Below, one piece after another: positions 2,690 through 30,180 of a stretch of DNA of 64,000 nucleotides. A program made the position numbers and the translations under genes. Source of the DNA: Takakia lepidozioides (Eukaryota > Plantae > Bryophyta); contig CM060734.1 in assembly GCA_030704615.1 (NCBI GenBank), positions 2,728,001 through 2,792,000 on the forward strand. The letters run 5' to 3'. A model generated the notes under the pieces. That model did no database searches. It was not told where the DNA came from and saw only the letters and a list, made by a program, of their open reading frames with translations. The first letter of the stretch is position 1. Every line of letters starts with the position of its first letter.

Positions 2690-3236
2690 CTATCCTCAAT
2701 TTTGGCGCCGTTATTGGCAAAACTCCATCGCCGTAAGCCGGGTATTTGCTCTCCAGAGCCCGATTTTGGCGCCGTTATTGGATGGACTGTGGAAGCTTCA
2801 GCCGGGAATTTGGTTTCCGGAGCCCAATTTCGGCGCCGTTATTGGTTGCACTCCGGAGGCTTCAGCCGGGTATTTGGTTTCCGGACCCCAATTTCGGCGC
2901 CGTTATCGGTTGCACTCCGGAGGCTTCAGCCAAGTATTTGGATTCCGGACCCCAATTTCGGCGCCGATATTGGCTGCACTCCGGAGGCTTCAGCCGGGTA
3001 TTTGGTTGGCGGAGCCCAATTTCGGCACCGTTATTGGCTTCACTCCCGAGCCTTCAGCCGGCTATTTCTTTTCCTGTGCCCAATTACGGCGCCGTTATAC
3101 CCAACCATCCTGCACTTCTGCAACAGTACTATCCACGGTTATAGGTCGCCATTGCATTTTCGGAGTCTGCAAACCCGGATCCTAATTCCGCTTGCGTCCT
3201 TTCCTCTGGGGTAATTTCGGTGCCGTTATTGGCGCC
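2690..3236. repeat. 64-bp tandem repeat (about 7 good copies plus degenerate copies)
   Basis: The motif ccaatttcggcgccgttattgg recurs at exact 64-bp steps (anchors 2698, 2762, 2826, 2890, 2954, 3018, 3082), with a degenerate copy near 3213. Confidence 0.95.
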
Positions 3237-5152: not shown

Positions 5153-5878
5153 TGTCGCGGCCCTTTGCCTCGAGGGCAAGGGGGTCGGGACACAAGAGGG
5201 GCTGCCCCTGTGGTGGGGGCAGTGGCAACAATAGGTACGGGGGCTGAAGCACCCTTGAGTGCCCAAGGCACTCAAGGAGGCGAAGACGCTCACTAGGTGG
5301 AGCCCCGCACACCGGGTTGTGGTGGGGGTGGTTCCACGAGGAGTGGTGGTAGCTTAGTGGGTCTTAGTGGGGGTGGCATAGGACTCACCATGGGGCGGAG
5401 ACCTTGTGGTGGGAGTCATGGGGAGTCTTGGGACTCATCACGGTCCATTGGGGTCATGGTGGGTGGGCTAAGACTCACCGCGACGCATCACTGAGAGTCA
5501 AGGGTCTTCGTGGTGGTTTGCCATAAAAAGATGGTGTTGTTTGTGAAACCGCCGCGGACAGTCACAGAAGTATATATAGGGAGTAGTAACCCCGAGAATG
5601 GTGCAAGCCCGTTGGTGACCAAAAACTAGTGAGTAAGCATGCGAGCCGGAAAGCGACCAAGGTGTGGGGAGCTGTTCCGGACTGCCAACAACCAAAGAGA
5701 ATTTTCACTAGGCCCAGAGTGAGCGAGGGTCTTGTGGAGGAGCAAAGGGGGACCGTTATGTCCCGGTGAGCAGCCGAAGCTCCGAGTTGGCCCGACGGCC
5801 AGTTTGGGAGTTAGGCGCGCGCATCGAAGCGAGTAACTATGACGTGAAGGGGAGCTTACCGAAGGGAGGTGCACGACA
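5153..5878 (+). mobile_element. 5' LTR (726 bp) of Ty3/gypsy element 1
   Basis: Starts TGTCG and ends CGACA (terminal inverted repeat), and is directly followed by a PBS. Homology of the host sequence to 29334+ stops at 5152. Confidence 0.85.
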
Positions 5879-5880
5879 CT

Positions 5881-5892
5881 TGGTATCAGAGC
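5881..5892 (+). promoter_or_regulatory. Primer-binding site complementary to initiator tRNA-Met
   Basis: TGGTATCAGAGC lies 2 nt after the LTR end. Confidence 0.92.
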
Positions 5893-5933
5893 TTAGAGTT
5901 CAGTACGCGATTGTCCTTGAGATCGGCCTCATC

Positions 5934-8900
5934 ATGGGGTCGGGCAAGACAAAGCGAAAGCGAAACGGCCCGAAAGATGATGATCCTGGTGAGCCCGGTG
6001 GGGGCAACATGTCACCGAAGCGGCAACTGGAAGAGGCGATTCATGCTTCCGAAAGCGAGGCCGCTCAAGAACGGGAGAAATTTTGGGAGTCAGAGCCCAA
6101 GGACTTCCCAGAGGCTCCGCCAGACCAACAGATGCCTCCCATGCCAGCAGCCTTTTGGGAAGGGTTGTTGGCGCAGTTTGGCGGGATGTTGAAAGACGTG
6201 TTGAGGGCGGCTAATGCCACTTCCACTAAGGCAAAGTTTAAGGTGAAGCCTAAGGAACCTGGCACCTTTGAGGGCGTCCGAAATTGGAAGGCACGCAACA
6301 CCTGGCTCTTGGAGCTAGAGCAGTACTTCCGGACGGCCAAGTTGAGTGACGAGGATCGGGTGGAAGTGGCTCCCACCTATTTGAGGGGCTATGCTCAACA
6401 ATGGTGGCAGAAACGCCTTCATGACCAAGGTCCAAACCCAGAAACCTTGAGCTGGAGTGGGTTCAAGGAACTTATGAAAAGACAGTTTATGCCCCTCAAC
6501 GCGTCCTGGCTTGCCCGAGACAAGATGAGGAATTTGAAGCAAACGGATGACATTCGGGGATATGTTCAGGCTTTCAATGTGTTGTTGCTCAAAGTCACGG
6601 ATATGGCAGAACTAGAAATGGTCCTCAACTTTGTGGCGGGATTGGCCCCATGGGCCAGGCGGAAGTTGGAGGAGAAGCCACCTAAGACTTTGAACGAGGC
6701 AATTGAGGCTGAATGTTTCTTGGATGTCCCTAGGGGCGAAAGACAAGGCTGTACGGAGCTGAACCACAAGAAGACCCGGCGGGAGGGTGACTCCTTCCGA
6801 CCGGAAAAGAAGTGGGATAGGCCACGCGGTGACAATGGCACATGGAAATCAAAGGGAGGGCCTTCACACGTCAAGACGGCACCCGGTGCTCCGAAAGGAA
6901 AATCAGGTGCGGTGGCTTATGGTGGATAGAAGGCGACCTTTGATGGAGTGTGCTTTAATTGCGGGGAGCCCGGGCACATGGCCAAGAAGTGCGCAAAACC
7001 CCGACAATTGAACATGACCCGGGCGACCACGGAGCTATCCGAAGATTCCATCAGCAGCTTGGTGGAAGCGGTGGTTGCCAAGACTTGCAAGGTAGACAAC
7101 TACTCTTGTGAGCTGTATCAGGAGACTAGCCCCTTGCGTAAAAGGAGTCAGTTAATGTTCGTGAGTGGGATAATTTCCGGAACTAACGTGTCGTTGTTGG
7201 TGGACACAGGAGCGTCGCACTCCTTCATGACACCGACAACGGCACGGAAGCTGGGGCTCCCGACAAGTGATGTGGGGGCCTCTATTGAAGTGCGTTCTAC
7301 CAAAGGAGAACCACAACTGGTGATGAGGTTGGCATTTGATGTTCCTCTTCAGCTGGGGAGTTGGGAGGGACGTGAGAACTTCACCATTTGCAAGATCGAT
7401 GGAGTGGATCTCATTTTGGTGATGACTTTTTTGAGCAAATCCGGAGCGGTCATAGATGGCCGCAAGAGAGTAGTCACGCTACCGTGTGGGGATGGTGGCG
7501 AAGTTTTACGGGTGTCGAAAACGCCCAACCGAGTGGGAGGGCGAATAAACCTGCTGACAGAAAAGGAGTGGGTCGTGGAGGAGCCACACGAACCCTAGTT
7601 TTTGTTTTACGTAAGACAAGTGGAAGGAGAAGTCGATAGGGAGCCGAGCCCAGATTGGATCAAGGGGATCCTAGAGAAATACCATGATGTGATGCCGGAG
7701 GATTTACCAAGCGGCTCGCCACCGCGAAGAGGAGTTGATCACAAGATAGAGGTGATACCGGGATCGGAGCCGCCTGCCAAGGCGCCCTACCAGTTGAGCC
7801 ACAAAGAGTTGGTCGAGCTAAAGGCCTAGCTCAAGGATCTAATGTCAAAGGGGTACATCCAGCCGAGTAAGTCACCTTACGGAGCCCCGGTGCTATTCGT
7901 AGACAAGAAGGATGGGATGCTGCGGATGTGTGTCGATTACAGGGCTCTGAATAAGGTGACTATCAAAAACCGATACCCTTTGCCAAGGATTGACGACCTC
8001 TTTGATCGGTTGGCAAGAGCAAAATATTTCAGCCGGATCGATTTGCGCTCAGGTTACCATCAAATCCGAGTGGCGGAAGGAGATGAGGAGAAGACTGCGT
8101 GCACGACAAGATATGGTTCATATGAGTTCTTGGTGATGCCTTTTGGTCTCACCAACGCACCCGCGACCTTTAGCACGCTAATGAACAGCCTTTTCCAGGA
8201 GTGGTTGGATGACTTTGTAATCATGTACATCGACAACATCTTGGTGTACTCGAAAACGAAGGAAGTGCACCTGGAGCACCTCAAAAGGGTGTTCCAGAAA
8301 TTGCGGGAAGGGAAGCTGTATGCCAAAGCTTCAAAGTGCGAATTCGGGGTCACAAAAGTGGAGTTCCTAGGGCATGTGATTACACAGGATGAGATCAAAA
8401 TGGATGACAGAAAGGTGAGGGCGATCTTGGACTGGGAGCCTCCGACTTTGGTCCCGGGAGTGCGATCCTTCCTAGGACTCGCCTCCTATTACCGAAAGTA
8501 TGTGAGAAATTTCGCCAAGACCGCGGGGCCGCTGTCAGACCTTCTGTGTAAGTCCAAGGTATGGGTATGGAATACCTTTTGTGGCCAAGCTTTTGCCGAG
8601 TTGAAGCAGCGGATGGCGCAAGCTCCAGTCCTGAAAATCCCGGAGTTTGCCCGTCCATTTGAGATTCATACAGATGCGCCGAACTTCGCAATTGGGGGTG
8701 TGCTCATGCAGGATGGACGTCCAGCGACTTACGAAAGTAAGAAACTGAATGAAGTGGAGCGACGGTGGCCTACGCACGAGAAAGAAATGAAGGCGGTGGT
8801 ACATTGCCTTGAGCTTTGGCGCCACTATGTTGGTTCCAACCCGGTAAAGGTGTTCACGGACAATGTCACGGTGAAGTATTTGGCCACATAGCCTAAGTTG

Positions 8901-9150
8901 TCCCCAAAACAACTTAGGTGGCAAGACACTTTGGCAGTGTTCGACGTGGATATCCAGTACAAACCGGGACGGGACAACGTGGTGGCCGATGCTTTAAGTA
9001 GAAAGCAACAGCTCATGTTGGTGTACAGGAGCGAGACGGCGCTCCAAAGGAAGATCCGGAAGGCTTACCGCAAAGATGAGATGGCAAAGTCCGTGATGCA
9101 GGACTTGAGGTTGGGGGTTAAATCACAGTTCCACTTGCACAATGGACTGC
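5934..9150 (+). mobile_element. Ty3/gypsy (chromovirus-type, Galadriel-like) gag-PR-RT-RNaseH; degenerate and truncated before integrase
   Basis: Gag (YLRGYAQQWW), zinc knuckle CFNCGEPGHMAKKC, protease [30 protein letters not shown]...YIDNILVYS (YIDD mutated to YIDN), RNase [20 protein letters not shown]. Several in-frame stops. Confidence 0.93.
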
Positions 9151-12100
9151 TGCTTGTAAGGGTGCGGGCGTAAGAGATGATCAGGGGGCTAGAGCCAATC
9201 CCAAAACGGTCATGTGGGAGTTGGGTAAGAACGTTAGGGGTGCTGGTGGGTAGGCCACAAATACGTTTGGTGAGTTGGATAATTTTGGAGTCGAGTAGTT
9301 TGATATCTGGAAAAGAGAAGGGGGCCGCGTGAAAGGAGTATTGGATTTGAGGGTTAAAAACTCTTTGGATGATAGTTAGTTTAGGGCGGATGGAGATCGG
9401 GGCGTTGAGTAGAGCTAAACTCTTGTTGGTTAGTTTGGAAAGGGTGGTGCTCTTTTGTATATGCCAAGTTAGGGATGGAACCAATTGTATGCATAGATAA
9501 GTGTAGGGTTCATCCGGACCTAAGAAGGGGAAAGATTTTTGTTGCAGGTGGAGCATGCAATGGGAAGCTATCGTGGATTTTGTGAGTTTCCTGCCGTGGG
9601 TGGCGGCGGTGACCGCACATTTTTTTAGACTTAGTTCCATACCAGACCATTGATTAAAGCGGTATAATTTGTCAGCCTGTCGGTTGAGGTGCTGAGGCTG
9701 ATGTGCTAGGATAGCGAGGTCGTCAGCATATGCTGCCGCTGAGATTTCAGTAGGGGAGGTTTTATAGTGGTAGCCTAAGTTACCACGGGCAAACCATCGT
9801 AAGAGAGGTTCTAGAAAGATGATGAATAGGTAGGGGCTCAGAGTGTCTCCTTGGATGGTACCGCAAAGGATGGGCATAGGGGGGGTGGTGCCATAGTATG
9901 AACCAGTGTATTCGGTGGTGTTGTTGGTGTAGATGTTCCCGATGAGTTGGATGGCATCTAGTGGGTAGCCCAAGTCCGTCATGATGGCGAGGAGACGTGG
10001 GTGGTCCATGGAGCCAAAGACATTCTTAAAGTCAATGTAGAGGAGGTAGATATCTTGTTTAGTGAGTTTGGTGTCTTCAAGGGCAGATAAGACATATTGG
10101 ATTTGCCTGGTGGTGCTACGCATTGCGCGGAAGCCTTCCTGGGGGTCGCTTAAAATACGATGTTGTTCGCCATAGGAAGATAGCATCGTGGTGAGGGTGC
10201 TAGTGAATAGTTTGTAGATAGTGTTAGCGAGGGCAATGGGTCTGTAATTACCGAGGTCGGTGGGGTCGTCTTTTTTGAATAGTAGAATGGTTCGGCTATG
10301 TTTCCAGGCATGTGGGATACAATGAAGTTGGTAGCAGAGTCGGAAGAATTTGTAGAGTAGAGCATGAAATTGGGGGTCAAGCGACTGTAGGATGGCATTA
10401 GGGATGAGGTCTGGGCCTGGGGCCTTTGCTTTGGGTAGAGCTTTTACACACGAGTCATATAGGCCAATTGTGAAGAGGTCAAGGATGCGGTCTGTGGGGG
10501 ACCCTCGTTTATCCAGGGAAAAGCCGTCAAGATCATGCCATGGGTAATGTTTGACTTTGCACATGCACTTGGGTGTGTGATGGCTAGGATGTAGACAACT
10601 GTCTACAATAGGTGTGTAGGAAGAAGAGGCTTGGTGCCAGATTTCCTTGTTGATGTCTGCAGGTTTGGTGAGTAGGTGCCCCAGTCTGTGTTTGAGGCAA
10701 TCGATAGGTGGGTTAATGGCAGGGTTGAAGATGGCTTTGTGGGCACGTTTTGGGTGGTCATGAAGTAGTTGGCCAAATGAGGCGATAAATTTTTTGTGGT
10801 TGGCGGAGGCTTTCTGTTTGGTGATAAGGTAAGCAGCTCTTTTTGCTTCCTGTCCGAGCTTAGAGAGGGAGGCGATCCATTGAGGGAGAGAGGAGGTGTC
10901 CGCAGGTGGGGACATAATTGGTTGACATATAGGTAGGGTGTTTAAGCATGTGATGCATGGGTCCGTCCTCCAGTTATTGAATAAGGGGGCCGGGGGGGGA
11001 GGTATAATTGCAAGCGCGCGGCGTATGGTGTGGTATATGTTGAGATGTGCTGTCCATTCTCGTTTCTGAGTTCCGGTGAGATATCCTCCGTTTTGTGTTG
11101 ATCGCGTCGTTTGGGGGAGGTCAGGGGGGGCAAAGCATGTGGCTAACACACTCCTAGTCATGTCTTGTAATGTGGATGTGATTGCCGTGTCGGCTTCATT
11201 CCAGTCAGCCTCTGAGGACAGTAGAAAATTGGAGTCAGAGAGTATGGGGGATATTTTGTGGATGAAATAAGAGGAGGCAGAGTGGAAGTGTTGTTGGAAG
11301 GCCTTGATATTAGTTTTAGGTATGGGTGAAAGTATACGGGGCTGGGACGGTGGGGTGTGGACATCTGGAATGGGCCGGAAGGGGACGAGGGAGGGGGGGA
11401 GAGAGACAGAGATCGGGTAGTGATCAGAGTTGCATAAGCTATTAAGGTGAATGTGACTCAAGAGGTAGGGTGGGATAGTATTGCTAGTTTTGAGGTAGAA
11501 CTCGTCCAGTAGGCATAAGGAAGAGTAGTTAAGGCCTCCTTGCCGGGAGTAGTGATGGTCCGCCAGGATGTATCTTAGGTCTAGTTGCTGGGTGAATCGA
11601 GCCCATTTGTGGTCCTCAGAGGATGGTGGTTTGTGGGTACCATTGTGGGAGTGCCCCTGTAGGGCGATGTCTATGTTAAAGTCACCTGCGAGGATGACGT
11701 GGTGGTGTTGGTTATCTGGATGGGTAATTGTTTGGGAGATATTATGTAGTATGTCTGTTATGAGGGGGAGGTCCTCGGGGTGTGAGGGCATGTATAGATG
11801 TATCAAAGTGATAGGGCAGAGTGCTGGGGGGTGTAGCTAGATAATTTGGAGGTGTGACCGAAGGGAGATGGGTACCGTGAGTTTTTGTGGTGGTGCTGGG
11901 AGAGTGGTGTGTGCGTAGAATACCTAGTGCAACGCCTCCCCTGGTGGGTTTGTATGGGGCAAAGCGACGAGATAGGCATTGCTGGGCAGTTAGAGGAGTA
12001 CCATACAATAGGTAATAGTCCGGTAGAAGATTGTTTATGTAGGAGCTGCTAGTATTGTTTGTGTGTAACTTAGTTTATTGGAGGAGAAAAATATGTGGTT

Positions 12101-15100
12101 TAGAGGAGTTGGTGAGGAGAGTGAGAAGACTTTGTATACTCGTAGCGAGGGATCCTACATTCCAAGAAGTAATAGTTAGTACACAGGTGTGGATGTCCGG
12201 GGTGGCAGGGGTCGGGTTGGGAGAGGGTGTGACCAATGACGCTTCCGTGGTTTGGGTTGCTGAGGTCGGGGGATTGTATCCAGGTATCGGACTAACTGCG
12301 GCGAGAGTAGAGTTGAGGATGTCAGTGGAGAGGAAGGGGAATTTGTGGGTGGCCTCAGTAAGGTCGGTATCAGGAGCGGTTATGGTAGCGAGATGGTCGC
12401 CTAGGATTTTATGTATAGCACCTGGTTGGGATTGCAATAGATTGACGGATTCATGGAGTGAGGATAGAAGGTGAGGTTGGGCTAAGTAGTTGTGCGGGTG
12501 CGGTGGCAGCCTTTTTAGTTGTAGGAGGAAGGGGCGTAGTTGGGAGGTGGAGTGGGAGTAGAGGAATCCATTACAGACTTCTGGTAGGGGTGAGATGATG
12601 ATTATAAGGGAGAAGAGAAGATGGAGCTGCGGGAAGGATTTGAGTTTTTGTAGTGCTTTAGAAAGTGCCGGGTAATGGCTAGGGGGGAGCCCGAAGGTGG
12701 TGATGATTTGTGTGGGTGTGTGGGCGGCGGCAGGGTGTGGCAGGAAGAAGGGCGTGAAGTGGTCACCAACGTGTCTATAGTTATGCATGAGCGACAAGGT
12801 ATCCGGTTGGAAGTATAATGAGTATTTGTCTTGCGCGTCGGCGGGGAGATTTTGAATAATGTCGTTAATGGGTGTAGGCCCAGGGTTTGGGTGTATATCA
12901 CCGCAACGGAGTAATGTTAGGTATAGGCATGCATTCATATATGACTGAAGTGACATGGGAGGGTGATGGTAGGAGTGTTTAGATTTGTCAAGATAAATAT
13001 GGTATCGACCATGCGGGCTACGTGTGTGGAGAGGCGGTCGGTCCATGTAGTGCCGTGCCCGGGGGTGGGGGAAGTTGATGGGGGGGGTGGGGAGTGTATG
13101 GGTCATGGATTGCGGGAAGGGGTGAGGGCTGGTGCCGCGCGTGGGGATGAGGCAGCTAGGTGGGCTATAGTGGGGATAATGTGGAGGGGGTGTTGGAGAG
13201 ATATGCAGTGCTTGCAGAGGAGCAGGTTGGCAGTGGGTGGTGAGGTAGGTATTGGGGAGTCGTGATGTTGGTGCCGAGGGTGGGTAATTAGTGTGAGAGC
13301 TATGCTGAGTTATATAGTGAGGGGTGGGATGTGGAGTGGTAATTGAACTGGCATATGATATGCGTAGGGGAATGACAGTTGGCGGGTGATTTTTATAGGG
13401 GTTGGTTTCGTGGAATTGACATAAATAGGCTATGGGCTGATTTTCATTTTTGGGCCCTGATGTGAGAATATAAGTGTGGTAAGCGATGGTTGTGTCAAGA
13501 TCCAATGCATGTAGCAGCCTGAAACATAGATGAGGGAGGCGTGCGAGATCAGCCTTGTGCGGTGTGTGTGTTTGGGTAATAGTAGTGGGAGGAGAGAGTT
13601 TTATAAAACATTGTGGGAAGGTGATGGGGGAATAGTGGGGGGAAGTAGTGTGAGGCAGTGATGTGAGGGTAGTGTGCTGGGTTTGAGTCAGACTTTGATA
13701 GAACCCAGGCGGGTAGATAAATGTGACATAAACAAAGAATGTGAATTGAGTACCACCATCTAGGAGCATCACATTTAATAAGCAAACTACTTGTGAGATC
13801 ATTGGTATAGCGCTGTTGGAAGATGCCAGAGAGTAGACACATGGTGGCCTGGGGAGGTCCGACTGGTGTGGCGCGCTTTGTTGCAGCGTTGTGTTCCTGG
13901 AAAGCATCGGGGTGAGCTGCATTTGAGTATGTGTTCATCAGCTTTGTCAGCATTATGCCGGGGCTTGATGGGATAGCTCTCCAACCTGTAGTTGCGACTG
14001 AAAGAGTAGGGTGAGGTAAGAATGTTAGAGGCCCATTGGGGTTTGAGGATAAGAAACAAATGAATTGAGAGCCACAATCTAGAAGCATCACCTTAGATAA
14101 GCAAGCTAGTAGTGCTGAGCAAACTGGCTGTGTATACACTGGTGGGTAATTTAAATCATGTGATAGATGTTGCACAGTCAGAGTGGGCCTAACCAGCTCA
14201 GGAGTCGAGAGAAGCGAGGTAGGATGTTGTCGGGAGTGTAAATGTGTACTGACAGGAGCACAGTTCGTGCCGAGAGATTGACTGTCCATTGCCAAAGTTT
14301 GCATGCAGGGGGCATAGTAGGATAGATACAAGCAAACTTGCATATGCAGTTCAGGCAGGGGCCGGTTGGAAGTAGGTAAGAAATAGAGTTCCAGTAAGTG
14401 TGCTGACCTGCTGCATGGTGGAGTGCCGGGATGACCAGCCTGATGAGCTACATCAGCTGGGGAACAGTTATTCTGGGGGTTTTGTGAGAGCAGTGCAAAC
14501 TTCCAATAAACCACGTTGGTAGCTTTAAAGCAGGGAGCAACTAGCAGAGTGGGTAGGAGGTTACCTGGAGGTGAGTTAGACGAGGGTAGAAGGGAAGTGG
14601 TGGGTAGGGGCCTGCTGATTGTGTGAAACCGCCATAAGATTGAGGGCTTTGGCGGACTGGCTGGCTGGTTCGGTGCAGCGGCTGATGGATGAAAACAGCC
14701 CCTGACAGTGCCACTGCTTCTGAAGGCCGGCAGATAAAGATGGTGGTTGGTAGTCATACATGGGTAATCATTAACAAGCCCGTGCACCCTTTGCTGTGGC
14801 AGCCAGCTTTGTTGGTCAAATCCTGTGGGCTGTTTGCTGTGGTGGCACAATGGGTTCTCTGTTGTGCGCTCCAGAACATCACATTCATGACGCCCTCTGA
14901 GCTCAGCATTTGCAGCACATGCATCATTGAGCATCTATGCAGATCAGCATAACTTGCCACGGGGGTAGCTGCGCAATTTACACCAGACCATTTGTGGAAA
15001 GAATGGACAGCTAGAGCTACTGTCGTTAACGATGTAGCATTTTGCTAACTAAGTGCTAGAGTAGAATTTTTGTAGTTAGCTATCAGAATCATGGTATCCG

Positions 15101-15500
15101 ACAATCGATCAACAGGATGCAAATGGTGTAGGGTAAAGTTATGCCTCACAGTCTCCAGCACTTTGTTCGATGATGCAGAGGGCACATGGTCAGTAGCCTC
15201 TGAAAAGCTGCAACAGCATGGCAAGGAGTATTGTTGACGGAGAGGCCCTGGTGGCTTGGCTGCAATGGAATATTATTGACATTCATGTTGGGCTCTGTAC
15301 CCAATCCATCTGCCAAGGCATGATAACTAAAGTGTTGAGGAAGAGGGTGACCCCGGGGAAGAGTCGCACGCTGGGATGCCCCGAAGCCGAATGAGGCCAC
15401 TATGGATTGAAAATCTGTAGGCTGGGTATAATGCCAAAAAGGCTTAACCCCCAGCCCCTGGCCTGCGGTGAGTATCCATGGAGCGTCACCAAACTTGGGC
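9150..15500 (-). mobile_element. LINE, 5' portion (long N-terminal region, 2A-like motif, APE endonuclease, RT)
   Basis: APE motifs TSWNVGS, LLQ*TKL, RGGVAL, LAGDFN, SDHYPI. RT motifs KAPGPD, NYRPIAL, QEGFR, LYIDFKNVFGSMDH, QGDTLSPYLF, YADDL. Ends abruptly just after the RT thumb; the 5' boundary is approximate. Confidence 0.92.
12876..12914 (-). other. 2A-like (StopGo) peptide motif LLRCGDIHPNPGP upstream of APE
   Basis: Resembles D[V/I]ExNPGP with H in place of E, in frame with the start of the APE domain. Confidence 0.7.
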
Positions 15501-15529
15501 CCCTGATGGGTATCTGCCTTTGAAGAGCC

Positions 15530-17139
15530 CCCTCAATACTTCAGCAGCTTATGACCTCCCATAACTCCCCGGAGCTTCCTCTCCCCGACTCCACCCCCCC
15601 CCTATCCCCGTTAATTGCCATGAGCAACTTCCCCCCACCCTCTAAACCCCCCTACCCCCCCTTCCCCCTACCTAGCCAACTCCAACCACCCCAAGGCCTT
15701 TGTCATTGAAGCTATTCTCGGCATCAAGACTCAAACCTCCCTCGACGTATACGACGCCACTTGTGTTGACACATATTACCTATGTAAATGGGCGGGTTTC
15801 CCTGTTACTGATAACACCTGGCAGATCAAAGACGACCTCTTTGGAACCCATGAAGATTGCGACCCTACTCACAACCGTAGCCTCCTTATCACCTTCTACA
15901 AAACAACTAACACCAATTACTTAGCGCACACCCACCAACATCATGTTTCTCAAACCCAACCAATCGACGCCCGATACATCCATACCCCCTTGAACGCTCC
16001 ACATATTCATATACACATCTCTGAATGCAACCCCGACAAAGATATTACCCAAATCTCCCCCATTATATGCCCTAGGCGCCTGACTTCCCATATCTACACA
16101 CTTAACGGTCACTTCACCGGCTCTATCTCTAATGTCAGACTCGTCTGGCTTTGGAATAGATATGACGCCTCCTCAACTGACACCATCCTGTTACAACCCC
16201 CAAAACAAGACTTTGCCACTGAGGTCTGCTGGCTTGTTGACCGATACTTACGCGATACCCCCACGAAAAAACCACACACCCCCGATAAACTAGCTCAAGC
16301 ATATACCCATAGCACTATACCCTCTGACATCCTCAAATTCCTCATCTCTACATTCCAGCTTACCCACTCATACTACTCCAGCCCACTTACATGCCCCCCA
16401 GAGCTTTCTTCTTACGCCAGCCCGCACCCCCGAGACTGTGTATTCAGAGCCTTGGGCCCCGCTACCCAACACTCTTGGTCTGGCGGTGGCCTTGCGCACC
16501 ACCTCCCGGGCACCCTCACACTGAGGCTCTCCTATGGCGCGCCTCGCTGCCACTCCTCCCCCTCCGCCTACACTATTCTCATTCTTACACATCAAAGCTC
16601 ACCTGACAACCAACATCCCCTTCTACAAATTCCTCCAGAAGTAATACCGTTAGCCGCTATTGAACCCAACCATCTTGGCTATACACACAACCTACCATTC
16701 CAAAATACCTCCGCCACAAAGAAACTACTCTGACCCTAATTCTGCTTGTTCAGGCTACCTCATGCCCCCCATACCCTCCGACTTCCCCGCTCATCTCAAT
16801 CGTCTACTTTCCGATACCCATAACATGTTACTCACGCCATACTCACCTCCACCCACATGCAACCCCACCGCTAGGCTACCCACTAAGCTAAAAGCATGGA
16901 CCTTAGCCACCCCCCCCCCCCCCCCCCCCCCCCCCCGCCCTAGCCCCACTCATACTATCTCCCACAACGCCCCCCGGTTCACCTTGGGCCCACTTCCCCA
17001 AAATACCCCCCCCCCCTCCACTCACACTACACAGACGGCTCCCAATCTGACTCCTGCGCCGGATACGGAGTCTACTATGCCGCTACTAACAAAGGTACCA
17101 CACATCGTCTCCCAGGCCCCGCGACCATACTCCGCGCGG
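15530..17139 (+). mobile_element. LINE, 3' portion: chromodomain, PCIF1-like methyltransferase fold and N-terminal RNase H
   Basis: Chromodomain at 15699-15839; PCIF1-like region ~16120-16600 in the same frame; RNase H YTDGSQSDSCAGYGVY...TILRA at 17028-17138. Same C/A-rich coding-strand bias as the minus-strand LINE piece. Confidence 0.8.
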
Positions 17140-17806
17140 CACAGCCCGTCACAGCGTACGTAGGGAAAGGTTATCATTGGCAGGGAACGACTGTGTGGGA
17201 ACGACATCTGCAGAGGGAACGTGTTTACTTTTTAGGTGACAGTTAGTTAGTTAGGCAGTTAGAATAGTTTGCAGGTAGATTAAGGAGAGCAGCAACAGGG
17301 AGGGGGACACTTCACGGGGAGCACTTCTTGGTCAGGCATGAGAGGAGATCTGGCGGAGAGCAAGAACGGAAGCAAGGATGGAGAGTACGGTGAAGGAGGA
17401 GAGATGATCAGTAGATGCTTGTTACATGCAAAGCTGTAGTGATACTGTAGAGGAGATTAAAGACACCATAGCTTCGGCCTGATACCTGATAAATCTTAAT
17501 CTGATACTTATTCGATACAATCACACTGTGTAGAGAGACTTGAGTGAAGTTGTGGAATGAATGGATGAGTGAAGGGAACCTGATAGATACAGAAGCAATC
17601 TGATGCTTCAGTATACACAGTAAGGTAATTTGCTAACATGAAGGCAAGAAGAAATACAAACAGGAAGCACAACCATGATTCACTAGCTGTACGTCATGAC
17701 TGATTGTTCTGAGCGGGGGGCTGAGTGCTTAGAGATATCCAACTCTTCTATCTTGGAGTTTCCACCTCGGATAGCGAAGGAATGGGTGAGTAAAAGTCGC
17801 TCGACA
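17140..17806 (+). mobile_element. 5'-truncated 5' LTR of Ty3/gypsy element 2
   Basis: Colinear with ~30480-31174; ends CGACA directly before a PBS. Confidence 0.8.
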
Positions 17807-17808
17807 TT

Positions 17809-17826
17809 TGGCGACCATACTAGGGA
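17809..17826 (+). promoter_or_regulatory. Primer-binding site, tRNA-Arg-like
   Basis: TGGCGACCATACTAGGGA lies 2 nt after the LTR end; TGGCGAC is typical of tRNA-Arg-primed non-chromoviruses. Confidence 0.65.
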
Positions 17827-20800
17827 ACTGGGTCAAGAACAACCAGATGTGACAGACATCTGGTGGGATCATGGTGGATGGAGAATTAAAGAATTTGATG
17901 TGAATCAAATTCCCTGTGGAACTGAGAAAGAAAGGTTGTCCAAGCAATTATTTCAGAGATTCTTGGAATTGCCAGACGGTTGCAAGTAAAACAGTCTTAA
18001 GAGAGTGCATGATGCGGATCTTGACTGGGGTCTGGAGAAAGGAGTGATAAAGATTTATCAAGTGGCCTGTAGAGGGAGAGCAAGTTGGTTACCAACGCTG
18101 GTTTATGTGATAGCGTTGCTATCCAAAAACGAGTGGAGTTTGAGGCTGGGAGGAACGGAAAGTGAATGTTTACACTCATATGCATGAAGAGTTGGTACTG
18201 GTAAAGAATTGGATTACTAAGGATATCCTGTGGATCAAATTGACACCAAGAACAGCTTTTCAGACGTGCTCGCCATATGGTTATATGGTAACAGAGACTT
18301 CTAGTATAGCCAAAGGTGCATTGAAGCTTGAAAGAAACCCAGGCATATATGAGAGATACTACATAAGAGAGTTTTGGTTATTGCCTCATTGAAGATATGA
18401 GAGACATGGGACACGAGTGATGAAAGAGAAGCTAGACTTCATAGATATTCAGCAGAAAGAGAAAGTTATTTGAAAGCTTATTATCCATATCTCTGCGAGA
18501 GAGGAATAGAATAGGAGAATTGTTGGACCTCTCACACCATTAAGATCAAAGAGTACATCACCCATACCGGAGGAACCAGAGTTGGATGCCACTCCTTCTT
18601 ATTCTTTACAAGAAAGATTAAGGGATTTGGTATAGGAAGAAGATCAACCACGAGGGGAGAGATCTGAGGTACATCCCTGGATCAAGGATTTGACAGAAAT
18701 CTTTGATAAGAGTTGGCATGGGACACCAAAGGCAGGAACTCCAGTTTCTGAATTACAAGATAAAGAGGGAGAGGAAGATGTGGCAGAACCAACGGAGAGT
18801 TCAGACTCTCCCACACCACTCCAGTTGAGTTACATGAGTGAGGAAGAAGAAATCCAAGAAAAGAGCTTGGAAGAAGAAAACAGAGAGAAGAATTTGGAAG
18901 ATGAGGAGTATGAAGAAGTAGACCCAACGGTTGAGGGTGAGACTAAAACCAAGACGTCCCAACCCGTTGGACCTGGATCAAGTGGAGCACTTGAATCACA
19001 GGCCAACGAAGGTGTCGGCTTAGGGGGATCAGGCAAGAAGCTTGGATCTGGCTCTAGGGGGACAGGGAGTGTGGGAAGTAGTGCAACTAGAGCTGGGAAT
19101 ACTGTGAGTATAGAAGGGCCAGTAGCAGGGAGTGCTCAGGGGCCAGCACCTGGTGGAAGATCCACCACTACAACAACAGGTCCTCAAGGACCAGCACCAA
19201 CAAGAGGACCACCACCTGTCAGAGGGCAGGGTGTGGGGCCACAGATGGCGGTACCTCCAACACGGGCAAAACCACCTTTTCCAATATATGCAGGGAAAGG
19301 GGATCCTGATGTACACATTAGCCAATTTGAGCACATGTGTATTGTGAACAATGAGAATGGCGATGATGCCAAGATGAGATTGTTTCCTTGTTCACTTATC
19401 AAGAAAGCAAGTGAATGGTATGCAAGATTTCCAGATAATCATTTCCTAACCTGGAATGGCCTTAGTACGGCATTCCGAAACAGGTTCAGGACAAGCAAAA
19501 CTGAGGATGAAGTGTATGGAAGTTTACAATAGTTAAGGCAAAGGAAACATGAAACTGTTGAGGAGTACATGGAAAAGATGGGGTTAATGATGAAAAAGCT
19601 GGCTGCTGTACCAGCGCCAGGGTTACAGAAGACCTGGTTTGTGAGTGGACTAAGACCAGAGTTGCAAAAGAAAGTGGATATGTTACCAATAATACAGTGG
19701 AGGAGGCATTTGAAACAGCAACAGGATTGAGCAATTGGGAATGCTCATAAGAGATAAAAGGGATGATGAGGACTCTGAGGATGAGTCAGATGAGGAAGAA
19801 GAGCAAGAGCTCAAAAGGACGAGTAAGAAGAAGGGAAAGATGAAGAGGGACAACTATGAGAAAAGACTAGAAGAAATCTTGAAGAAGTATGCCACAGAGG
19901 CTGCAACACATTGGAGGAAGGGTGTTTGGTGTGCAAAATGCCAGAATGAAGGCCATACACAGCTGAATGCCACATGAAGAGAAGAACTGTACTATCTGTA
20001 AAATGGATAACCATTCTCTTGAGAATGTTACTACAACAGAGGACAACTGCAAGAGAAGAGAATCTAGGCAAGTGAGGGTGCATCAAGTGCAGCCCCAGCC
20101 AAGAAGAAACAATGAACATGACCACTATGGTAGGCCTGGTGGATATAACAATGGTATGGCAGGGAGAGGTAATCCAAGAGGGAATACCTAAGGAAGGAAA
20201 TCCCAGAGGCAACTATCAGGGTAATCCAAGGGGGAATTACCAGCCAGGGAATCAGGATTATAGAAATAATCCCAGAGCAGACCAAGGGCGAAGACCCAAT
20301 GGTGAAGAACTGTGTTACTATTGTAATCAGGCAGGATATCGTAAGGCAGCCTGTCCATTCTGGATCAGACACCAGAATGAGATGAGAGCTCTTGTGAATG
20401 AGGGCCCGGTGGTGGCAGCTCACATGGTTAGGCCATGTTTTATACCAGAAGTAAGTACGATGATAGTAACCAGAAGCAAAGCTAAACTAATACCTCCAAT
20501 GGATGAGGAAGAAGATGGTTATGAGGATGGCAGTGATGTGCCTAAAGATGATGAGGCTTGGAGAGATGAGAAGGAACTGCACAGGGAAGTGGTTGACACC
20601 ATAAGGGAAAGCAAGAAGAGTACTGATATTCCTATGGTAGATACCTCTGACTCTGATAGAGAAGATGGAGAGAATTCAGATCAAGTGAAGAAGGAAGCTG
20701 CACAAGTGCAGAGTAATGAAGGGATTTTGGCTGAAGTAATATGCCAGACCAAAGCTGAGATTACCATTGGACAGCTATTGGCTGTGGCACCTCATTGTAG

Positions 20801-23800
20801 GCACGGCTGTATCAAGCATTAATCAGATTGCTCATGTGACAGAAAACACAGACTTGAATAGCAAGGTGACAAGTTATAATGTGAGGCCTGAAGGGCGAGA
20901 AACAGTCATGGATTTTGATGATTCTATGCCAGTAATCCAATTGAAAATTGGAAGCACAGACTTGACTGATGTACTGATAGATGGAGGTTCGGGAGTGAAT
21001 ATTATGACAGACCAATTAAGACGGAAACTTGGTCTGAGTAACATGAAACCAGCCCCATTTACAGTAACAATGGCAGATCAAAGGAGTGTACAGCCTTTAG
21101 GCTTGATAAGAGAGTAAAGATACCGATCAGATAAGAGATGATTTTTAAGATCACAGTGACTGTGTTGAAAATGGATGATGTCATGGAAGCTTACTCCTTA
21201 TTGCTGGGGCGACCATGGCTGAAACAGGCCAGGGTATTCCATGACTGGAATTCCCAGTTACTGACTGTGCATGGTGGGAAGCACAAGATACAGGTCACCA
21301 CTAGGAAATCTAGTAGACTACCTGCTACCAGAAGACCTCGTGGAGTCAGAGAGTATGACTGGAGGGGAGGACTCGATGAGGAGCAGGAAGCTACCCTATT
21401 TGCTGCGCACCCAGAGTGGGAGCAGGTTGCAAAAATGCAATTGGGAGGCCTGAGTTGTTTAAAAGGTATCTGCTGTGGTGCAGTGACAACAACACAAATG
21501 AGGGGGAAACAAGTAGTTACCCACCACATTTCTATGAGGAAAGAGAGGGAGAAATGGAAATCCTAGAAGAACCAGCCATTGTGAGTTTAGAGGATGAAGT
21601 AGTGGCTGGATGGACAATCATAGCTGAAGAGCAGGTGAGAGACGTGAATGTGGGAACTGAGGAGGAACCCAGAATGGTGAAGTAGGGGCTGACTTGGAGC
21701 CGAATTATTTTGAGGAGGCTAAGAACCTGTTTATCAAATACAAATATGTATTTGGATGGAGTTATGAGGATCTGAAAAGGATACCCCCTGAGATTTGCCA
21801 GCATAAGATTGAACTGGAACCGGGGTCAGTACCAATCAAACAGGCAAGGTAACAGGATGAATCCCAACTATGCACAGAACGTTGGGGAAGAGATCAAGAA
21901 GTTGGCTGAGGCTAAGTTCATATACCCAATAGAGTATACAACTTGGTTGTCACCCATAGTGATAGTTCCCAAGAAAAATGGCAAACTGAGAGTTTGTGTG
22001 AACTATAAAAAGTTGAATGCTTGTACAAAGAAAGATCCTTTTCCCTTGCCATTCACAGAAGCGATACTGGACACTGTGGCAGGCCATGAGATGTACTCAT
22101 TCATGGATGGCTTCAGTGGGTATAACCAAGTACAAGTGGCAGAAGAAGACCAGGGAAAGACAGCTTTCATCACAGACTGGGGTGCTTATGCATACAAAGT
22201 CATATCTTTTGGACTTTGTAATGCACCAGCAACTTTTCAGAGAGTGATAAGTGAATCCTTCCATGAGTATCTGGATGATTTCATGCAAGTGTTCTTAGAT
22301 GACTTCAGTGTGTACAGCTCTAAGAATGAGCACCTGCAGAAGTTGGAGTTATTGTTGGCCAGATGCAAGATGAGAGGTCTCAGACTGAATCCGGAAAAGT
22401 GTACTTTTTGTGTGAACTCAGGGGTACTACTGGGACACATTGTGTGTAAGAAGGGACTGCTTGTGGATCCCAAAAAGACGGAGGCCATTAAAGCATCACC
22501 ACCACCAGGAAATGTTAAAAGTCTAAGGGATCCTTGGACAAACCAGTTACTACAGAAGATTTGTCAGACAGTATGCACAGATGGCAGCACCTTTGAGCAA
22601 GCTTCTGAAGAAGGATGCAGTGTTTACATGGACAGATGAAATTGTCAACAGGCTTTTGAGGAACTTACATTGTCAGTAACAACTACACATGTGCTGATTA
22701 ACCCTCACTGGCACGTAGTATTTCATGTACACTGTGATGCCTCAGGAGAAGCATTGGGACCTGTGTTAGCCCAAAATATCACAGGAAACATAGATTCACC
22801 TGTGTACTATGCTAGCAGGTTATTGAACAGTGCTGAAAGGAACTATAGCACCACTGAAAGAGAAGCATTGGCAATGATTTATGCAGTCAAGAAATTCAGG
22901 CATACCTATTGGGAATGAAGTTTATATTTTATGTGGATCATCAGGCTTTGATTTATCTGGTGAACAAGCCTTTGATAAGTGGCAGGATAGCAAGATGGTT
23001 AATAATCTTGCACGAGTTTGAATTCGAAGTTGTTTACAAGCCTGGCCGTTTGCATCTTGTGGCAGATCACTTGTCATGCCTATCAACAGGAGAGCCCGCC
23101 ACAGGAGTAGACGATCAACTACCTGATGCGAGTCTATTTGCAGTGGAGGTGCAAGGAAGTGCAAATGATTGGTTAGATTGGCAGTGGTCAATCAGATACT
23201 ACCTTACTCATGGTCAGTGCCCACCCAGTTATGGGAAGGAACAGAGGAAGAGAATAGCTATCAAGGCTTTACCTTACACTATGATAGGTGGCGGATTGTA
23301 TAAGCTAGGACCTGATGGAGTACTTAAACGATGCTTGTACCACCATGAAGTAAATAAAATTTTGGAGGAAGTTCATAAGGGAGTGGCTGGAGGTTATTTT
23401 GGAGAGGAGACTACCAGCAAAAAAAATACTACTTGCAGGTTATTGGTGGCCTACTCTGTTCAAAGATGTGCATAAGTATTGCAAGAGTTGTGATGAGTGT
23501 CAGAGGCTAGGACCTTTGCAAAGATCTGGGAAGATGGCTTTGCATTCGACGATGCCTACTGAACCATTTCATAAATGGGGACTAGACTTTGTTGGACCAA
23601 TAAACCCACCAGCCAGAAATACACAGAACAAGTATATAATCATAGCCACTGATTATACTACAAAGTGGGTGGAAGCTAAAGCTCTGAGGGATAACACAGC
23701 TAAGTCCATAGCAAGGTTCCTGTATGAGAACATACTTACAAGATTTGGCTGTCCCCTGGAATTTATTAGTGACCAGGGAAGTCACTTCATTAACGAAACT

Positions 23801-26078: not shown

Positions 26079-28833
26079 CGAATTTCGATTATTACACTGG
26101 GACGTATCGGAGGGTACATTGAAACACCGGCCCAAGCTTCGAAGCGAACGAAAAATCATTTGGATGGGCAAACCATCCGTTGGCCCGTTGAACGAAATTC
26201 GATTGATCTCATATTACTCTGGGGCGTCTTACATGGCACATTGAACATAGTGGCCAAGTCTCAAAGCCAACCAAAATCATTTCCATGGCCAACCATCCGT
26301 TGAGCCATCGAATGAATTTCGATTGATCTCTGTTTCCTTTCTGCCTCTGCTTTGTATTGCATGTTGTACAACGATAACAAGCGTGAGACCTGCGATTCAC
26401 CTGGGGTTCCGCATCGTCTCTAACTTAACTGTTTCTGATTGCGTGTGATGGGACCAGGCGAGGGTCCTCGCTTAACATGGATTTTAAAGCTTGAAGTTGA
26501 TTGGAATCGAGTTGAAGAAGCGACGCCATCTGTATCTTGGGGGGAGAACGAACGATCCTTTCTTCCTCTTCCTTTGATCTTGATGGCTCTATGTTTAACC
26601 TAGTTGGTGGGACAATCAATCATTAGGGCGACTACTCTCGTTCCACTATGGCATACTGATGTGACGATGGAGCAATGATATGACAAGCTGACGTGCGTGC
26701 CAAATTTTGGGAGCGATCAAAATTCATTTGGACCCAAAACCACAGTTTCTTCCCGTTGCACTCCAAACTTGATTTGTGTTCTACTTCGTGCACTTTAATG
26801 GAGAGTTCTGCAATAGTGAACGAAGAGAACACCCTTTTTTGGGGGCATTTTGATTGGTCCGAATTCCGGGGGGGAGTAGCGGTGGGATGCTGGAAGCCGC
26901 TGAACAAAATTGAGCCGAAAACGAAATCGATACGTGCCAGAAACCCCCAATGAAAGGCAGTGCAAACCTATTTACTGGCTTAAAATAAATTTAAATTCAA
27001 TTAAATTGTGGAATGGCTCGAGGGAGGAGCGCGTCGATTGGGAGGCAATGATTTATTCGTCTGTTGTGTCTCCGCGCATGTTGCGAGCACATGCGGGCAA
27101 AAGAGGGGCTTCAACACACATCCGTTCATGGGTGCAATAGTCGTGCACGCATTGCAGGATTTCTTTTTTCGCATTGAACAAAAACCAGAGACAAGTGAAC
27201 GCTCGTTGGACAATCGAACGCATTTCGATTTTACACCTGGGACGTATCGGAGGGTACATGAACACACCGGCCAAGCTTCGAAGCGAACGAAAAATCATTG
27301 GATGGGCAACCATCCGTTGGCCCGTTGAACGACATTTCGATTGATCTCATATTACTTGGGTCTTACATGGCACATTGAACATAGTGGCCAAGTCTCAAAG
27401 CCAACCAAAATCATTTCCATGGCCAACCATCCGTTGAGCCATCGAATGAATTTCGATTGATCTCTGTTTTCCTTTTCTGCCTCTGCTCTGTATTGCATGT
27501 TGGTACAAACGATAACAAGCGGTGAGACCTGCGATTCACCTGGGGTGTCCGCATCGTCTCTAACTTAACTGTTTCTGATTGCGTGTGATGGGACCAGGCG
27601 AGGGTTCCTCGCTTAACATGGATTGTAAAAGCTTGAAGTTGATTGGAATCGAGTTGAAGAAGCGACGCCATCTGTATCTTTGGGGGAGAACGATCCTTTC
27701 TTCCTCTTCCTTTGATCTGATGGCTCCTATGTTTAACCTAGTATGGTGGACAAATCAATCATTAGGGCGACTATCTCTCGTTTCCCTATGGATATGATTG
27801 TGACGATGGAGCATGATATGACAAACTGACGTGCGTGCCAAATTTGGGACGCGATCAAAATTCATTTGGACCCGAAAACCACAGTTTCTTCCTTTGTTTT
27901 GCACTCCAAACTTGATTTGTGTTCTACTTCGTGCACTCTTAGGAGAGTTTCTGCAATAGTGAACGAAGAGAACACCCTTTTTTGGGGCATTTTGATTGGT
28001 CAGATCCGGGAAGGGAGAAGGGCGGCGGAGTAGCGGTGGTATGATGGAAGCCGCTGAACAAAATTGAGCGAAAACGAAATCGATACGTGCCAGAAAACCC
28101 AATGAAAGGCAGTGCAAACCTATTTACTGGCTTAAATAAATTTAAATTCAATTAAATTGTGGAATGGCTCGAGGGAGGAGCGCGTCGATGGGAGGCAAAT
28201 GATTTATTCGTCTGTTGTGTCTCCGCGCATGTTCGAGCACATGCGGGCAAAAGAGGGGGCTTTCAACCCAATCCGTTCAATGGGTGCAATAGGGTGCACG
28301 CATTGCAGGATTTCTTTTTTCGCATTGAACAAAAACCAGATGACAAGTGAACGCCGTTGGACAATCGAACGAATTTCGATTATTACACTGGGAGTAGCGG
28401 AGAGGGGAGGGTACATGAACACACCGGCCAAGCTTCGAAGCGAACGAAAAATCATTTGGATGGGCAACCATCCGTTGGCCCGTTGAACGAATTTCGATTG
28501 ATCTCATATTATTGGGGCCGGTCTTACATGGCACATTGAACATAGTGGCCAAGTCTCAAAGCCAACCAAAATATTTCCATGGCCAACCATCCGTTGAGCC
28601 ATCGAATGAATTTCGATTGATCTCTGTTCCTTTCTGGCTCTGCTTTGTATTGCATGTTGTACAACGATAACAAGCGTGAGACCTGCGATTCACATGGGGT
28701 TCCGCATCGTCTCTAACTTAACTGTTTCTGATTGCGTTGTGATGGGACCAGGCGAGGGTCCTCGCTTAACATGGATTTTAAAGCTTGAAGTTGATTGGAA
28801 TCGAGTGAAGAAGCGACGCCATCTGTATCTTTG
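26079..28833. repeat. ~1.14-kb tandem repeat (2.4 copies, runs into the gap); partial copy at ~32050-32860
   Basis: Unit starts at ~26079, ~27218 and ~28369; the copies differ mostly by small indels. Confidence 0.92.
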
Positions 28834-29333
28834 NNNNNNNNNNNNNNNNNNNNNNNNNNNNNNNNNNNNNNNNNNNNNNNNNNNNNNNNNNNNNNNNNNN
28901 NNNNNNNNNNNNNNNNNNNNNNNNNNNNNNNNNNNNNNNNNNNNNNNNNNNNNNNNNNNNNNNNNNNNNNNNNNNNNNNNNNNNNNNNNNNNNNNNNNNN
29001 NNNNNNNNNNNNNNNNNNNNNNNNNNNNNNNNNNNNNNNNNNNNNNNNNNNNNNNNNNNNNNNNNNNNNNNNNNNNNNNNNNNNNNNNNNNNNNNNNNNN
29101 NNNNNNNNNNNNNNNNNNNNNNNNNNNNNNNNNNNNNNNNNNNNNNNNNNNNNNNNNNNNNNNNNNNNNNNNNNNNNNNNNNNNNNNNNNNNNNNNNNNN
29201 NNNNNNNNNNNNNNNNNNNNNNNNNNNNNNNNNNNNNNNNNNNNNNNNNNNNNNNNNNNNNNNNNNNNNNNNNNNNNNNNNNNNNNNNNNNNNNNNNNNN
29301 NNNNNNNNNNNNNNNNNNNNNNNNNNNNNNNNN
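28834..29333. other. Assembly gap (500 N)
   Basis: Run of n. Confidence 1.
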
Positions 29334-29852
29334 TACTGGCATGAGGCAAGTACCATGTTGAAGGAATTAATTGCCTTCCAAGTTGTACATGGATTCATTT
29401 ATACCAAGACCAAGGAGGTAGCAAGTATTGTCATGGGCTGTGGGTTATACTACGCTGCTTGTTTTTCTGGTACGTTATCACATTGAGCAGCACAAGATGC
29501 AATCGCGCTTTCTGAGTATTCCAGTGTGGAAATCATTGGGTCTTACTTCAGTGCCACCTCATATGTACCTATATGAGGCAAAGTTATGATGCAAAAGGAT
29601 TCTCAAATTCGTTCATGGTTTCATGCGGCCTGGACAATTTGTCAACAACAGAAATTGGCCCTGACGATATTTTTCTTTAAGGGACATGAGGGATGGAAAT
29701 ACTTGCACAATTCACAAGTCATTGGTACCCCACTCTTCACCAATTTTGCCATTCAGCCTTTACAGCAAGTTTTACAGAAAGTTTTAAAATTTAAACTTCC
29801 AGACATGGTAGGACAACATGTATGCCCAGAGGATTACACAAAAAGTCGATAG
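29334..29852 (+). pseudogene. C-terminal part of the unknown accessory ORF upstream of the PPT and 3' LTR
   Basis: One frame (two internal TGA) continues the 4874-5152 protein to ...CPEDYTKSR*. Confidence 0.6.
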
Positions 29853-30167
29853 TTAAAACACCTGAGAGGCGATGAGGATTCTGGGTACAAATGTTTCTTC
29901 AGCGGACTCTTTTGACAGGGAGAAGACTATGCAATTCAGAGATGGCAGAGAAGAAGTGCACGGGGGGTCTCCTATGCCTGAAAGATTACCTCGATATCAG
30001 CTCCAGAGGGCCTCACCTATCCAGGTAGTGTTCAATCATCTCCGCCAACCAGTGACAGACCTCGGGCTCGTACACAGAGTCCTTCAAGAAAGTCTCAACG
30101 TCAGAAAGGTGCTCGCTCACAAAGGTTTGCTAATCCCAATTAGTAAACCGTGAGGACACGGTTTTTT

Positions 30168-30180
30168 GAGAGAGGAAGGG
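30168..30180 (+). promoter_or_regulatory. Polypurine tract
   Basis: GAGAGAGGAAGGG follows a T-run and directly precedes TGTAA. Confidence 0.75.

Follow-up and report, generated by a model that had tools for sequence, protein, structure and literature searches.

PCIF1/CAPAM, the writer of cap N6,2'-O-dimethyladenosine (m6Am), is a free-standing nuclear enzyme whose N-terminal WW domain binds the Ser5-phosphorylated C-terminal domain of RNA polymerase II (Pol II) and whose helical domain and methyltransferase domain together form the m7G-cap pocket. Long interspersed nuclear elements (LINEs) are usually thought to carry just an endonuclease, a reverse transcriptase (RT) and sometimes an RNase H, and among other retroelements the DIRS elements carry a Dam-like methyltransferase domain. 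Here we describe a LINE fragment at 15590-17137 (+ strand) of a 64,000-nucleotide stretch of Takakia lepidozioides DNA (assembly GCA_030704615.1, contig CM060734.1, positions 2,728,001 to 2,792,000; hereafter the window, with coordinates counted from its first letter). The fragment encodes a chromodomain, a domain of approximately 260 residues and the first approximately 40 residues of an RNase H. Our analyses show that the central domain is truly homologous to the methyltransferase domain of PCIF1/CAPAM. The fragment itself is a dead copy of a Dualen-type LINE, from a family whose PCIF1-like domain has most likely been kept as a non-catalytic or non-canonical binding module in this lineage and is probably an active enzyme in a second clade, named here NPEY after its motif.

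Several described systems bear on this assignment. The catalytic NPPF tetrad of CAPAM (N553-F556) is essential, and the NPPF to APPA mutant is dead (bioRxiv 10.1101/484931; PMC8287941), while the helical domain confers cap specificity (10.64898/2026.10.22.757692). Drosophila Pcif1 is a catalytically inactive PCIF1 orthologue that reads NPPH at this motif, and flies are without m6Am (PMC9479742). Dualen LINEs are defined by a dual-endonuclease layout, with both an apurinic/apyrimidinic endonuclease (APE) and a restriction-like endonuclease (RLE) (PMC4640811). Cytosine DNA methyltransferases (DNMTs) have been acquired by algal and dinoflagellate retrotransposons, according to the work of de Mendoza et al. 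2018 as cited in PMC6338049.

The PCIF1-like domain lies at 15957-16730 (+) and is equivalent to CAPAM residues ~417-665. The Pfam family PF12237 (PCIF1_WW) models the methyltransferase core despite its name and has a curated gathering score of 31.1 bits. The window copy, which is decayed, reached 18-19 bits against this cut-off (E = 1e-3), with Chromo as its sole other Pfam match, and a hidden Markov model (HMM) of the family gave 276 bits across 15957-16625. A word-indexed search returned eight relatives of the domain with 35-44% identity (E = 6e-72 to 2e-26), seven of them annotated with PF12237. When the eight were rescanned, three exceeded the PF12237 cut-off (P0004, 34.1 bits; P0006, 31.7 bits; P0007, 35.7 bits), as did a number of longer members of the family (P0128, 53.7 bits, E = 2.4e-14; P0140, 39.7 bits; P0036, 39.6 bits; P0130, 35.9 bits; P0139, 32.9 bits). 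An exhaustive profile search, seeded by an alignment of nine sequences of the domain, gave 756 cluster representatives at E<=1e-3, of which 330 remained at E<=1e-10. The homologues all come from JGI/ENA metagenome assemblies.

Comparison with known structures required profiles because the single window sequence was too weak against PDB: phmmer with the window ORF (open reading frame) alone produced a chance match only (BCAR1, E = 1.3), and the domain of P0139 alone produced none. A profile of 68 sequences matched zebrafish CAPAM (6IRX, E = 2.3e-8) and human PCIF1 (6IRV, E = 2.7e-6), with no other credible match in PDB. Fold tests were made on the closest relative, P0001, and not on the broken window copy. 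The AlphaFold2 model of its domain (P0001:62-346) had a pLDDT (predicted local distance difference test) of 85.4 and a pTM (predicted template modelling score) of 0.80. With this model, the six best Foldseek matches were the six CAPAM entries (E = 6e-9 to 3e-8, TM 0.52-0.60), followed by ZCCHC4 at E = 1.6e-3. VIA-align superposed model residues 33-285 onto residues 417-665 of CAPAM (6IRW) with a Z score of 16.6, 226 residues aligned and a root mean square deviation of 4.5, the next fold (KsgA, METTL5) scoring Z 8.0. The similarity to PCIF1 is far above chance.

An earlier note on this DNA, made from its letters alone, had proposed a LINE polyprotein with a PCIF1/CAPAM-like methyltransferase fold between a chromodomain and an RNase H. 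This proposal is backed by Pfam, profile, fold prediction and fold search, and the significant profile or structural match to PCIF1 on which the note had made it depend was obtained with PF12237 in the relatives, the profile against 6IRX, Foldseek and VIA. The note had also listed six blocks of PCIF1 sequence as matching in order. Five of these recur in the same order and register in the HMMER alignments to 6IRV and 6IRX; the first, ISNVRLVWLWNRY, falls outside the sequence alignments and is covered by the structural superposition only.

What the LINE domain shares with PCIF1/CAPAM (PDB 6IRV-6IS0; PF12237) is a homologous Rossmann methyltransferase domain, in which FASPLN/YSSPLT, D..FGS.G, the motif IV loop and then a helix and a strand follow each other in the same order. 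The WW domain was absent from all Pfam scans of the window and its relatives, where Chromo or PHD was found instead. The helical domain is mostly missing, with the structural alignment restricted to CAPAM 417-665, a segment that comprises the methyltransferase domain and only the last piece of the helical domain. The region upstream of the PCIF1-like domain holds the chromodomain and a proline-rich linker, and an unrelated substitute may be present in the RT-proximal region. Since the helical domain is the part of CAPAM that gives cap specificity, strict CAPAM-type cap-specific recognition is doubtful here. The earlier note had gone further, with the hypothesis that the retrotransposon may modify or bind its own RNA cap or cDNA. 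The two proteins also differ in context, PCIF1/CAPAM acting as a protein on its own and the LINE domain being part of a retrotransposon polyprotein between RT and RNase H, and at motif IV, where the NPPF of CAPAM stands against H-P-P-x in the window lineage and NPEY in the sister clade. The domain descends from the PCIF1 methyltransferase domain, yet it is no PCIF1 orthologue, because the WW domain, the helical domain and NPPF were all tested for and not recovered.

Relatives outside the window place the domain in a complete element. P0139 is one 3459-residue ORF in which Pfam identifies an APE (Exo_endo_phos, 986-1225), RVT_1 (1661-1932), PHD (2482-2520), PCIF1_WW (2672-2840) and RNase_H (2977-3112). 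RT and PCIF1_WW occur together in P0128, PCIF1_WW and RNase_H in P0025, P0130, P0036 and P0020, and the Pfam RNase_H is present in P0139, P0025, P0062, P0130 and P0036. On contig L001, an RT is followed by P0007 (RT tail, chromo-like region and PCIF1-like domain) and then by RNase H. The earlier note would have given up its proposal had no genomic copy joined the domain to LINE RT and RNase H; copies with this contiguity were found in P0139, P0128, P0130, P0025 and L001.

Beyond the RNase H, members of the family align over a CCHC-like motif and RHN, with an invariant PD and, further on, an E. This C-terminal domain in P0158 had no match by sequence against PDB and none against Pfam. With a model of P0158:500-749 (pLDDT 76), the seven best Foldseek matches were R2 retrotransposon proteins (E = 4.5e-7 to 1.9e-3), and PD-(D/E)xK nucleases came after them. 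The comparison with Dualen-type LINEs that had been suggested for the locus is right, since the family carries a predicted R2-like RLE besides the APE. As single ORFs elsewhere read APE-RT-PHD/chromo-PCIF1-like-RNase H-RLE, the PCIF1-like domain belongs to the standard domain set of a Dualen-type LINE family, the class being assigned by domain layout and not by an RT tree.

The family resembles Dualen/RandI in its N-terminal-side APE, its RT and RNase H, and its C-terminal CCHC motif and restriction-like endonuclease (PMC4640811). It differs in the chromodomain/PHD and PCIF1-like module between RT and RNase H, which is unmentioned for Dualen in the searchable literature. A full-text literature search found no publication joining PCIF1 or PF12237 with non-LTR (non-long terminal repeat) elements or Dualen, an absence that is not proof of novelty. 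The DNMT-bearing retroelements and DIRS are precedents for the recruitment of methyltransferase domains into retroelement polyproteins; the methyltransferases in those LTR-like or DIRS elements act on DNA and are of C5-cytosine or Dam type, whereas the domain described here is the homologue of an RNA-cap-type adenine methyltransferase in a LINE.

In the window, translation shows an open frame from ~15590 to a stop codon at 16731-16733 (+). The ORF of 15990-16733 (+) given in the earlier note is present; the ORF listing begins at the first start codon, 15990, and the frame in fact reaches back to ~15590. The placement of this ORF between the chromodomain and an RNase H start, YTDGS, is also correct. 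The chromodomain (15699-15848, +; Pfam PF00385) scores 24.9 bits (E = 1.9e-5), marginally under its cut-off of 25.1 bits, and its counterpart in P0001 scores 36.6 bits, above the cut-off. Upstream of it, a translated proline-rich linker in the zone of 5' truncation (15590-15698, +) aligned in tblastn with the linker that precedes the chromo-like region in P0165 and P0007. According to word depth in the DNA runs, repeat depth climbs only from ~15644-15705, and 15400-15573 looks single copy.

On the other side of the PCIF1-like domain, a decayed linker (16731-17018, +) contains several in-frame stops and a C homopolymer at ~16903-16937, and the tblastn alignments of P0158 and P0001 pass through the stops. 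The N-terminal start of the RNase H follows at 17019-17137 (+), with YTDGS at 17028-17042 in frame with the upstream ORF, beyond the several in-frame stops. Approximately 35 residues after YTDGS align to the RNase H-bearing P0025, P0158 and P0062 before the tblastn alignments end at 17138, the RNase H being cut at 17137/17138. In the rest of the window, tblastn found no second copy of the PCIF1-like domain and no downstream continuation of the cut RNase H. The coding strand of the fragment is strikingly poor in G.

The position equivalent to NPPF lies in a zone of broken frame (16497-16565, +), as seen in three-frame translations. The reading of HHLP in the ORF frame, as claimed earlier, agrees with our translation. 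The claim that correction of a 1-nt frameshift at ~16500 would restore HPPP did not survive, as the alternative frame reads H-P-P-G, and neither did that of a single frameshift. More than one frame break is present between ~16497 and 16565, because in the ORF frame the ~20 residues past the motif are unlike the family (z = -1.0 against shuffles) and in the alternative frame H-P-P-G is followed by a family-like helix (z = 2.8, a value reached by 6 of 300 shuffles). Paralogous contigs from the same genome differ from the window by indels of 1-2 nt at 16498, 16511, 16521, 16535 and 16548/9, positions that fall exactly in the broken-frame zone.

In Logan contigs from four DNA runs of one sample, hundreds of short pieces are 90-99% alike, and the family is therefore multi-copy. 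Other genomic copies among these contigs continue past 17137 with RNase H-like sequence, unlike the window. A run search found the stretch contained in no RNA run. The window copy is dead, being 5'-truncated, frame-broken, stop-ridden and 3'-cut, and it is an inert fossil: with its frame broken, its stop codons and the LTR-type element that cuts it, it does nothing.

Motif IV was tallied in 130 family sequences covering it, drawn from the best 150 of the 756 matches and one search seeded with an NPEY member. In the profile alignment, 'glaHPtn' of the family (within 'sgsglaHPtn') pairs with 'SFEANPPF' of PCIF1. Position 1 is H in 72 of the 130 sequences, N in 28, Y in 11 and F in 7, and position 2 is P in 106. 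Position 3 is spread over E (30), P (26), T (23) and H (18), and position 4 over Y (35), D (27), N (24) and T (19), with Y confined to the NPEY and HPPY types and D, N or T elsewhere.

These residues sort into two clades. The NPEY sister LINE clade (27 sequences) has an invariant ANPEY and FASPLN exactly as PCIF1; P0128, which has RT, and P0130, which has RNase H, are among its members. The H-P-x-x clade is larger and holds everything close to the window; its motif IV reads HPPN, HPPD, HPHN, FPTD, YPTE and the like, and the lineage consensus of H-P-(P/H/T)-(D/N/T) departs from the catalytic [DN]-P-P-[YFW]. A few forms (AHPPF, AHPEF, HPPY) fall between the two. An NPEY-type PCIF1-like ORF was also seen standing alone, at 7959-8660 (+) of a 2.96 Mb contig (L004; ENA ERZ25071669), and neither RT nor RNase H was detected in the 8 kb flanking it on each side; the ORF may be the relic of a LINE or may have been domesticated.

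Outside motif IV, conservation is strong. The S-P of motif I is conserved in both clades, and the D..FG loop (the RD.IFG block) is kept, with D in 125/143, F in 132/138 and G in 118/138 sequences. Several blocks are invariant among relatives that are merely 35% identical. In class I methyltransferases, the motif I and D..FG loops hold the cofactor. The earlier note had cautioned that the domain might lack activity or serve for binding, which agrees with the loss, across the family, of the N and the aromatic residue of motif IV. Drosophila Pcif1 is a precedent for a PCIF1-family protein that is under selection despite damage to motif IV (PMC9479742); the fly protein is a host protein that keeps the N, the WW domain and the helical domain, whereas in the LINE domain the N is replaced and the protein belongs to a mobile element.

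The explanation that we favor is built on these observations. The polyprotein runs from RT through a histone-mark reader (a chromodomain, or a PHD finger in some relatives) and the PCIF1-like domain to RNase H. With the N and the aromatic residue of motif IV lost and positions 3-4 drifting, the H-P-P-x domain is probably no longer a classical adenine-N6 methyltransferase. Since the domain has been kept over deep divergence with its cofactor loops intact, it would most likely be retained as a module that binds or scaffolds nucleic acid and/or S-adenosylmethionine (SAM) in the RT-RNase H machine, perhaps cooperating with the adjacent chromatin reader. Members of the NPEY clade probably still methylate adenine, in element RNA or in cDNA or target DNA.

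Some points weigh against this explanation. The window fragment is without an RT, and its membership in a LINE is assigned by sequence homology to other copies. The clade proportions are biased by sampling, because the analyzed set joined the best 150 of 756 matches to an NPEY-seeded search. The mapping of cofactor residues draws on general knowledge of class I methyltransferases and not on a residue-level superposition. In addition, the His and Pro at motif IV positions 1 and 2, together with the preserved cofactor loops, could belong to an active enzyme with a non-canonical chemistry or another substrate.

The last point leads to the alternative that fares best, namely that the H-P-P-x domain is an active SAM-dependent methyltransferase with a non-canonical motif IV, acting on its own RNA (cap-adjacent or internal A), on cDNA or on target DNA. 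The motif I-like SP(L) and the acidic D and FG of the cofactor loops are conserved, as are the His (72/130) and the Pro (106/130) of motif IV, the AHPPF, AHPEF and HPPY intermediates retain an aromatic residue, and the fold is intact in the model. However, positions 3 (P/T/H/N) and 4 (D/N/T/Y) drift widely, which is unexpected for a catalytic tetrad. Mutation of N and F abolishes PCIF1 activity (10.1101/484931), the NPPH of the fly accompanies the absence of m6Am (PMC9479742), and the helical domain that positions the cap and the target adenosine is mostly absent from the LINE domain (10.64898/2026.10.22.757692). On balance, we regard an active H-P-P-x enzyme as unlikely.

Another possibility is that the chromodomain/PHD and the PCIF1-like domain form a chromatin-targeting unit that chooses integration sites, with the methyltransferase fold serving only as a protein- or nucleosome-binding surface. 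This idea overlaps with the binding module that we favor. A histone-mark reader is always found directly upstream (Chromo in the window, P0001 and the P0007-like form; PHD in P0139 and P0183), and a parallel exists in PCIF1, which is brought to Pol II by a reader-like WW domain of its own (PMC8287941). The type of reader varies between chromo and PHD while the PCIF1-like domain stays, however, which suggests separable roles. Such a unit is quite improbable. A chance resemblance, or a single event in which one LINE copy picked up a piece of a host PCIF1 gene, would agree with the score of the window copy alone (19 against 31.1 bits in Pfam) and with its empty-handed phmmer search of PDB. Both are excluded, because there are 756 cluster representatives, a large number of which join the domain to RT and/or RNase H within one ORF, because profile and fold searches point specifically to CAPAM, and because this genome holds many paralogues.

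The surroundings of the fragment are made up of other mobile elements, and the region is a nest of retrotransposons. The LINE fragment is truncated by an inserted LTR-type retrotransposon (17138-22639, +) whose ORFs for gag, protease and RT occupy 18690-22639. Across 17108-17200, the word depth of the DNA runs goes up at least ~100-fold, starting at tens or hundreds and reaching 5,000-140,000, and in the loose ends of contigs the other copies of the inserted repeat have a different left neighbor. Few repeats in this genome reach the abundance of the inserted LTR-type sequence. A repeat search found no LTR pair for this element, its sole result being a tandem array made of ~1.1 kb units at 26-33 kb; this tandem or dispersed array (26192-32880, +) consists of ~1.14 kb units in families D1-D5, with 2-5 copies at 62-98% identity. 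The gag-protease-RT element at 18690-22639 differs from a Ty3/gypsy-like element at 5766-8891 (+), which has a gag with a CCHC knuckle, an aspartic protease and an RT, and which breaks off at ~8900 where a minus-strand LINE starts.

The minus-strand LINE (9065-14934, -) is the 5' part of an element of the same family, with an N-terminal region, an APE and an RT (~9518-10273). Pfam gave RVT_1 at E = 9.4e-30 and Exo_endo_phos_2 at E = 7e-4. The element ends after the RT, and the part with chromo, PCIF1-like domain and RNase H is missing. Its RT is 62% identical to that of L001, which precedes a PCIF1-like domain and RNase H. Within the ORF 12075-13922, upstream of the APE, 12876-12914 (-) encodes a 2A-like ribosome-skipping motif (GDIHPNPGP). 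The minus-strand 5' part (9065-14934) and the plus-strand 3' part (15590-17137) stand head-to-head, the geometry of a twin-primed, 5'-inverted insertion. A single insertion of this kind was considered and not adopted, because ~180 residues are missing between the two parts and 15400-15573 is seemingly single copy. A third copy of the family is represented by a CCHC/restriction-like endonuclease fragment (63325-64000, -), detected by tblastn with P0025, P0062, P0158 and the L001 C-terminus, which is decayed and runs past the end of the window. A repeated peptide theme, LQPGIWFPEPNFGAVIGCTPEASAGY, recurs in three ORFs that overlap in different frames at 2454-3214 (+), which points to a tandem DNA repeat of ~150-200 bp.

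A conserved, family-wide domain derived from the writer of cap m6Am would add a new kind of accessory function to those of retrotransposons, and it connects mobile elements with RNA-cap or adenine methylation. The natural motif IV series, from NPEY through HPPF/HPEF to HPPx, could show a methyltransferase turning into a pseudoenzyme. The family gives plant and algal biology a PCIF1-family fold for study and makes LINE self-RNA modification directly testable with recombinant domains. As a tentative extension, plant and algal Dualen-type LINEs might have captured a cap-adjacent adenosine methyltransferase domain with which the NPEY clade would mark its own transcript at the cap-adjacent A, or its cDNA, protecting the RNA from decapping or host sensing or allowing recognition in cis, and in the H-P-P-x clade, with this genome in it, the domain might be a pseudoenzyme that holds the template RNA 5' end or cap, or a flipped base, during target-primed reverse transcription; we see this as conceivable, with the odds leaning against it. 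If an NPEY writer and an H-P-P-x pseudoenzyme are indeed what this family encodes, it would provide the first retrotransposon-encoded epitranscriptomic writer or reader.

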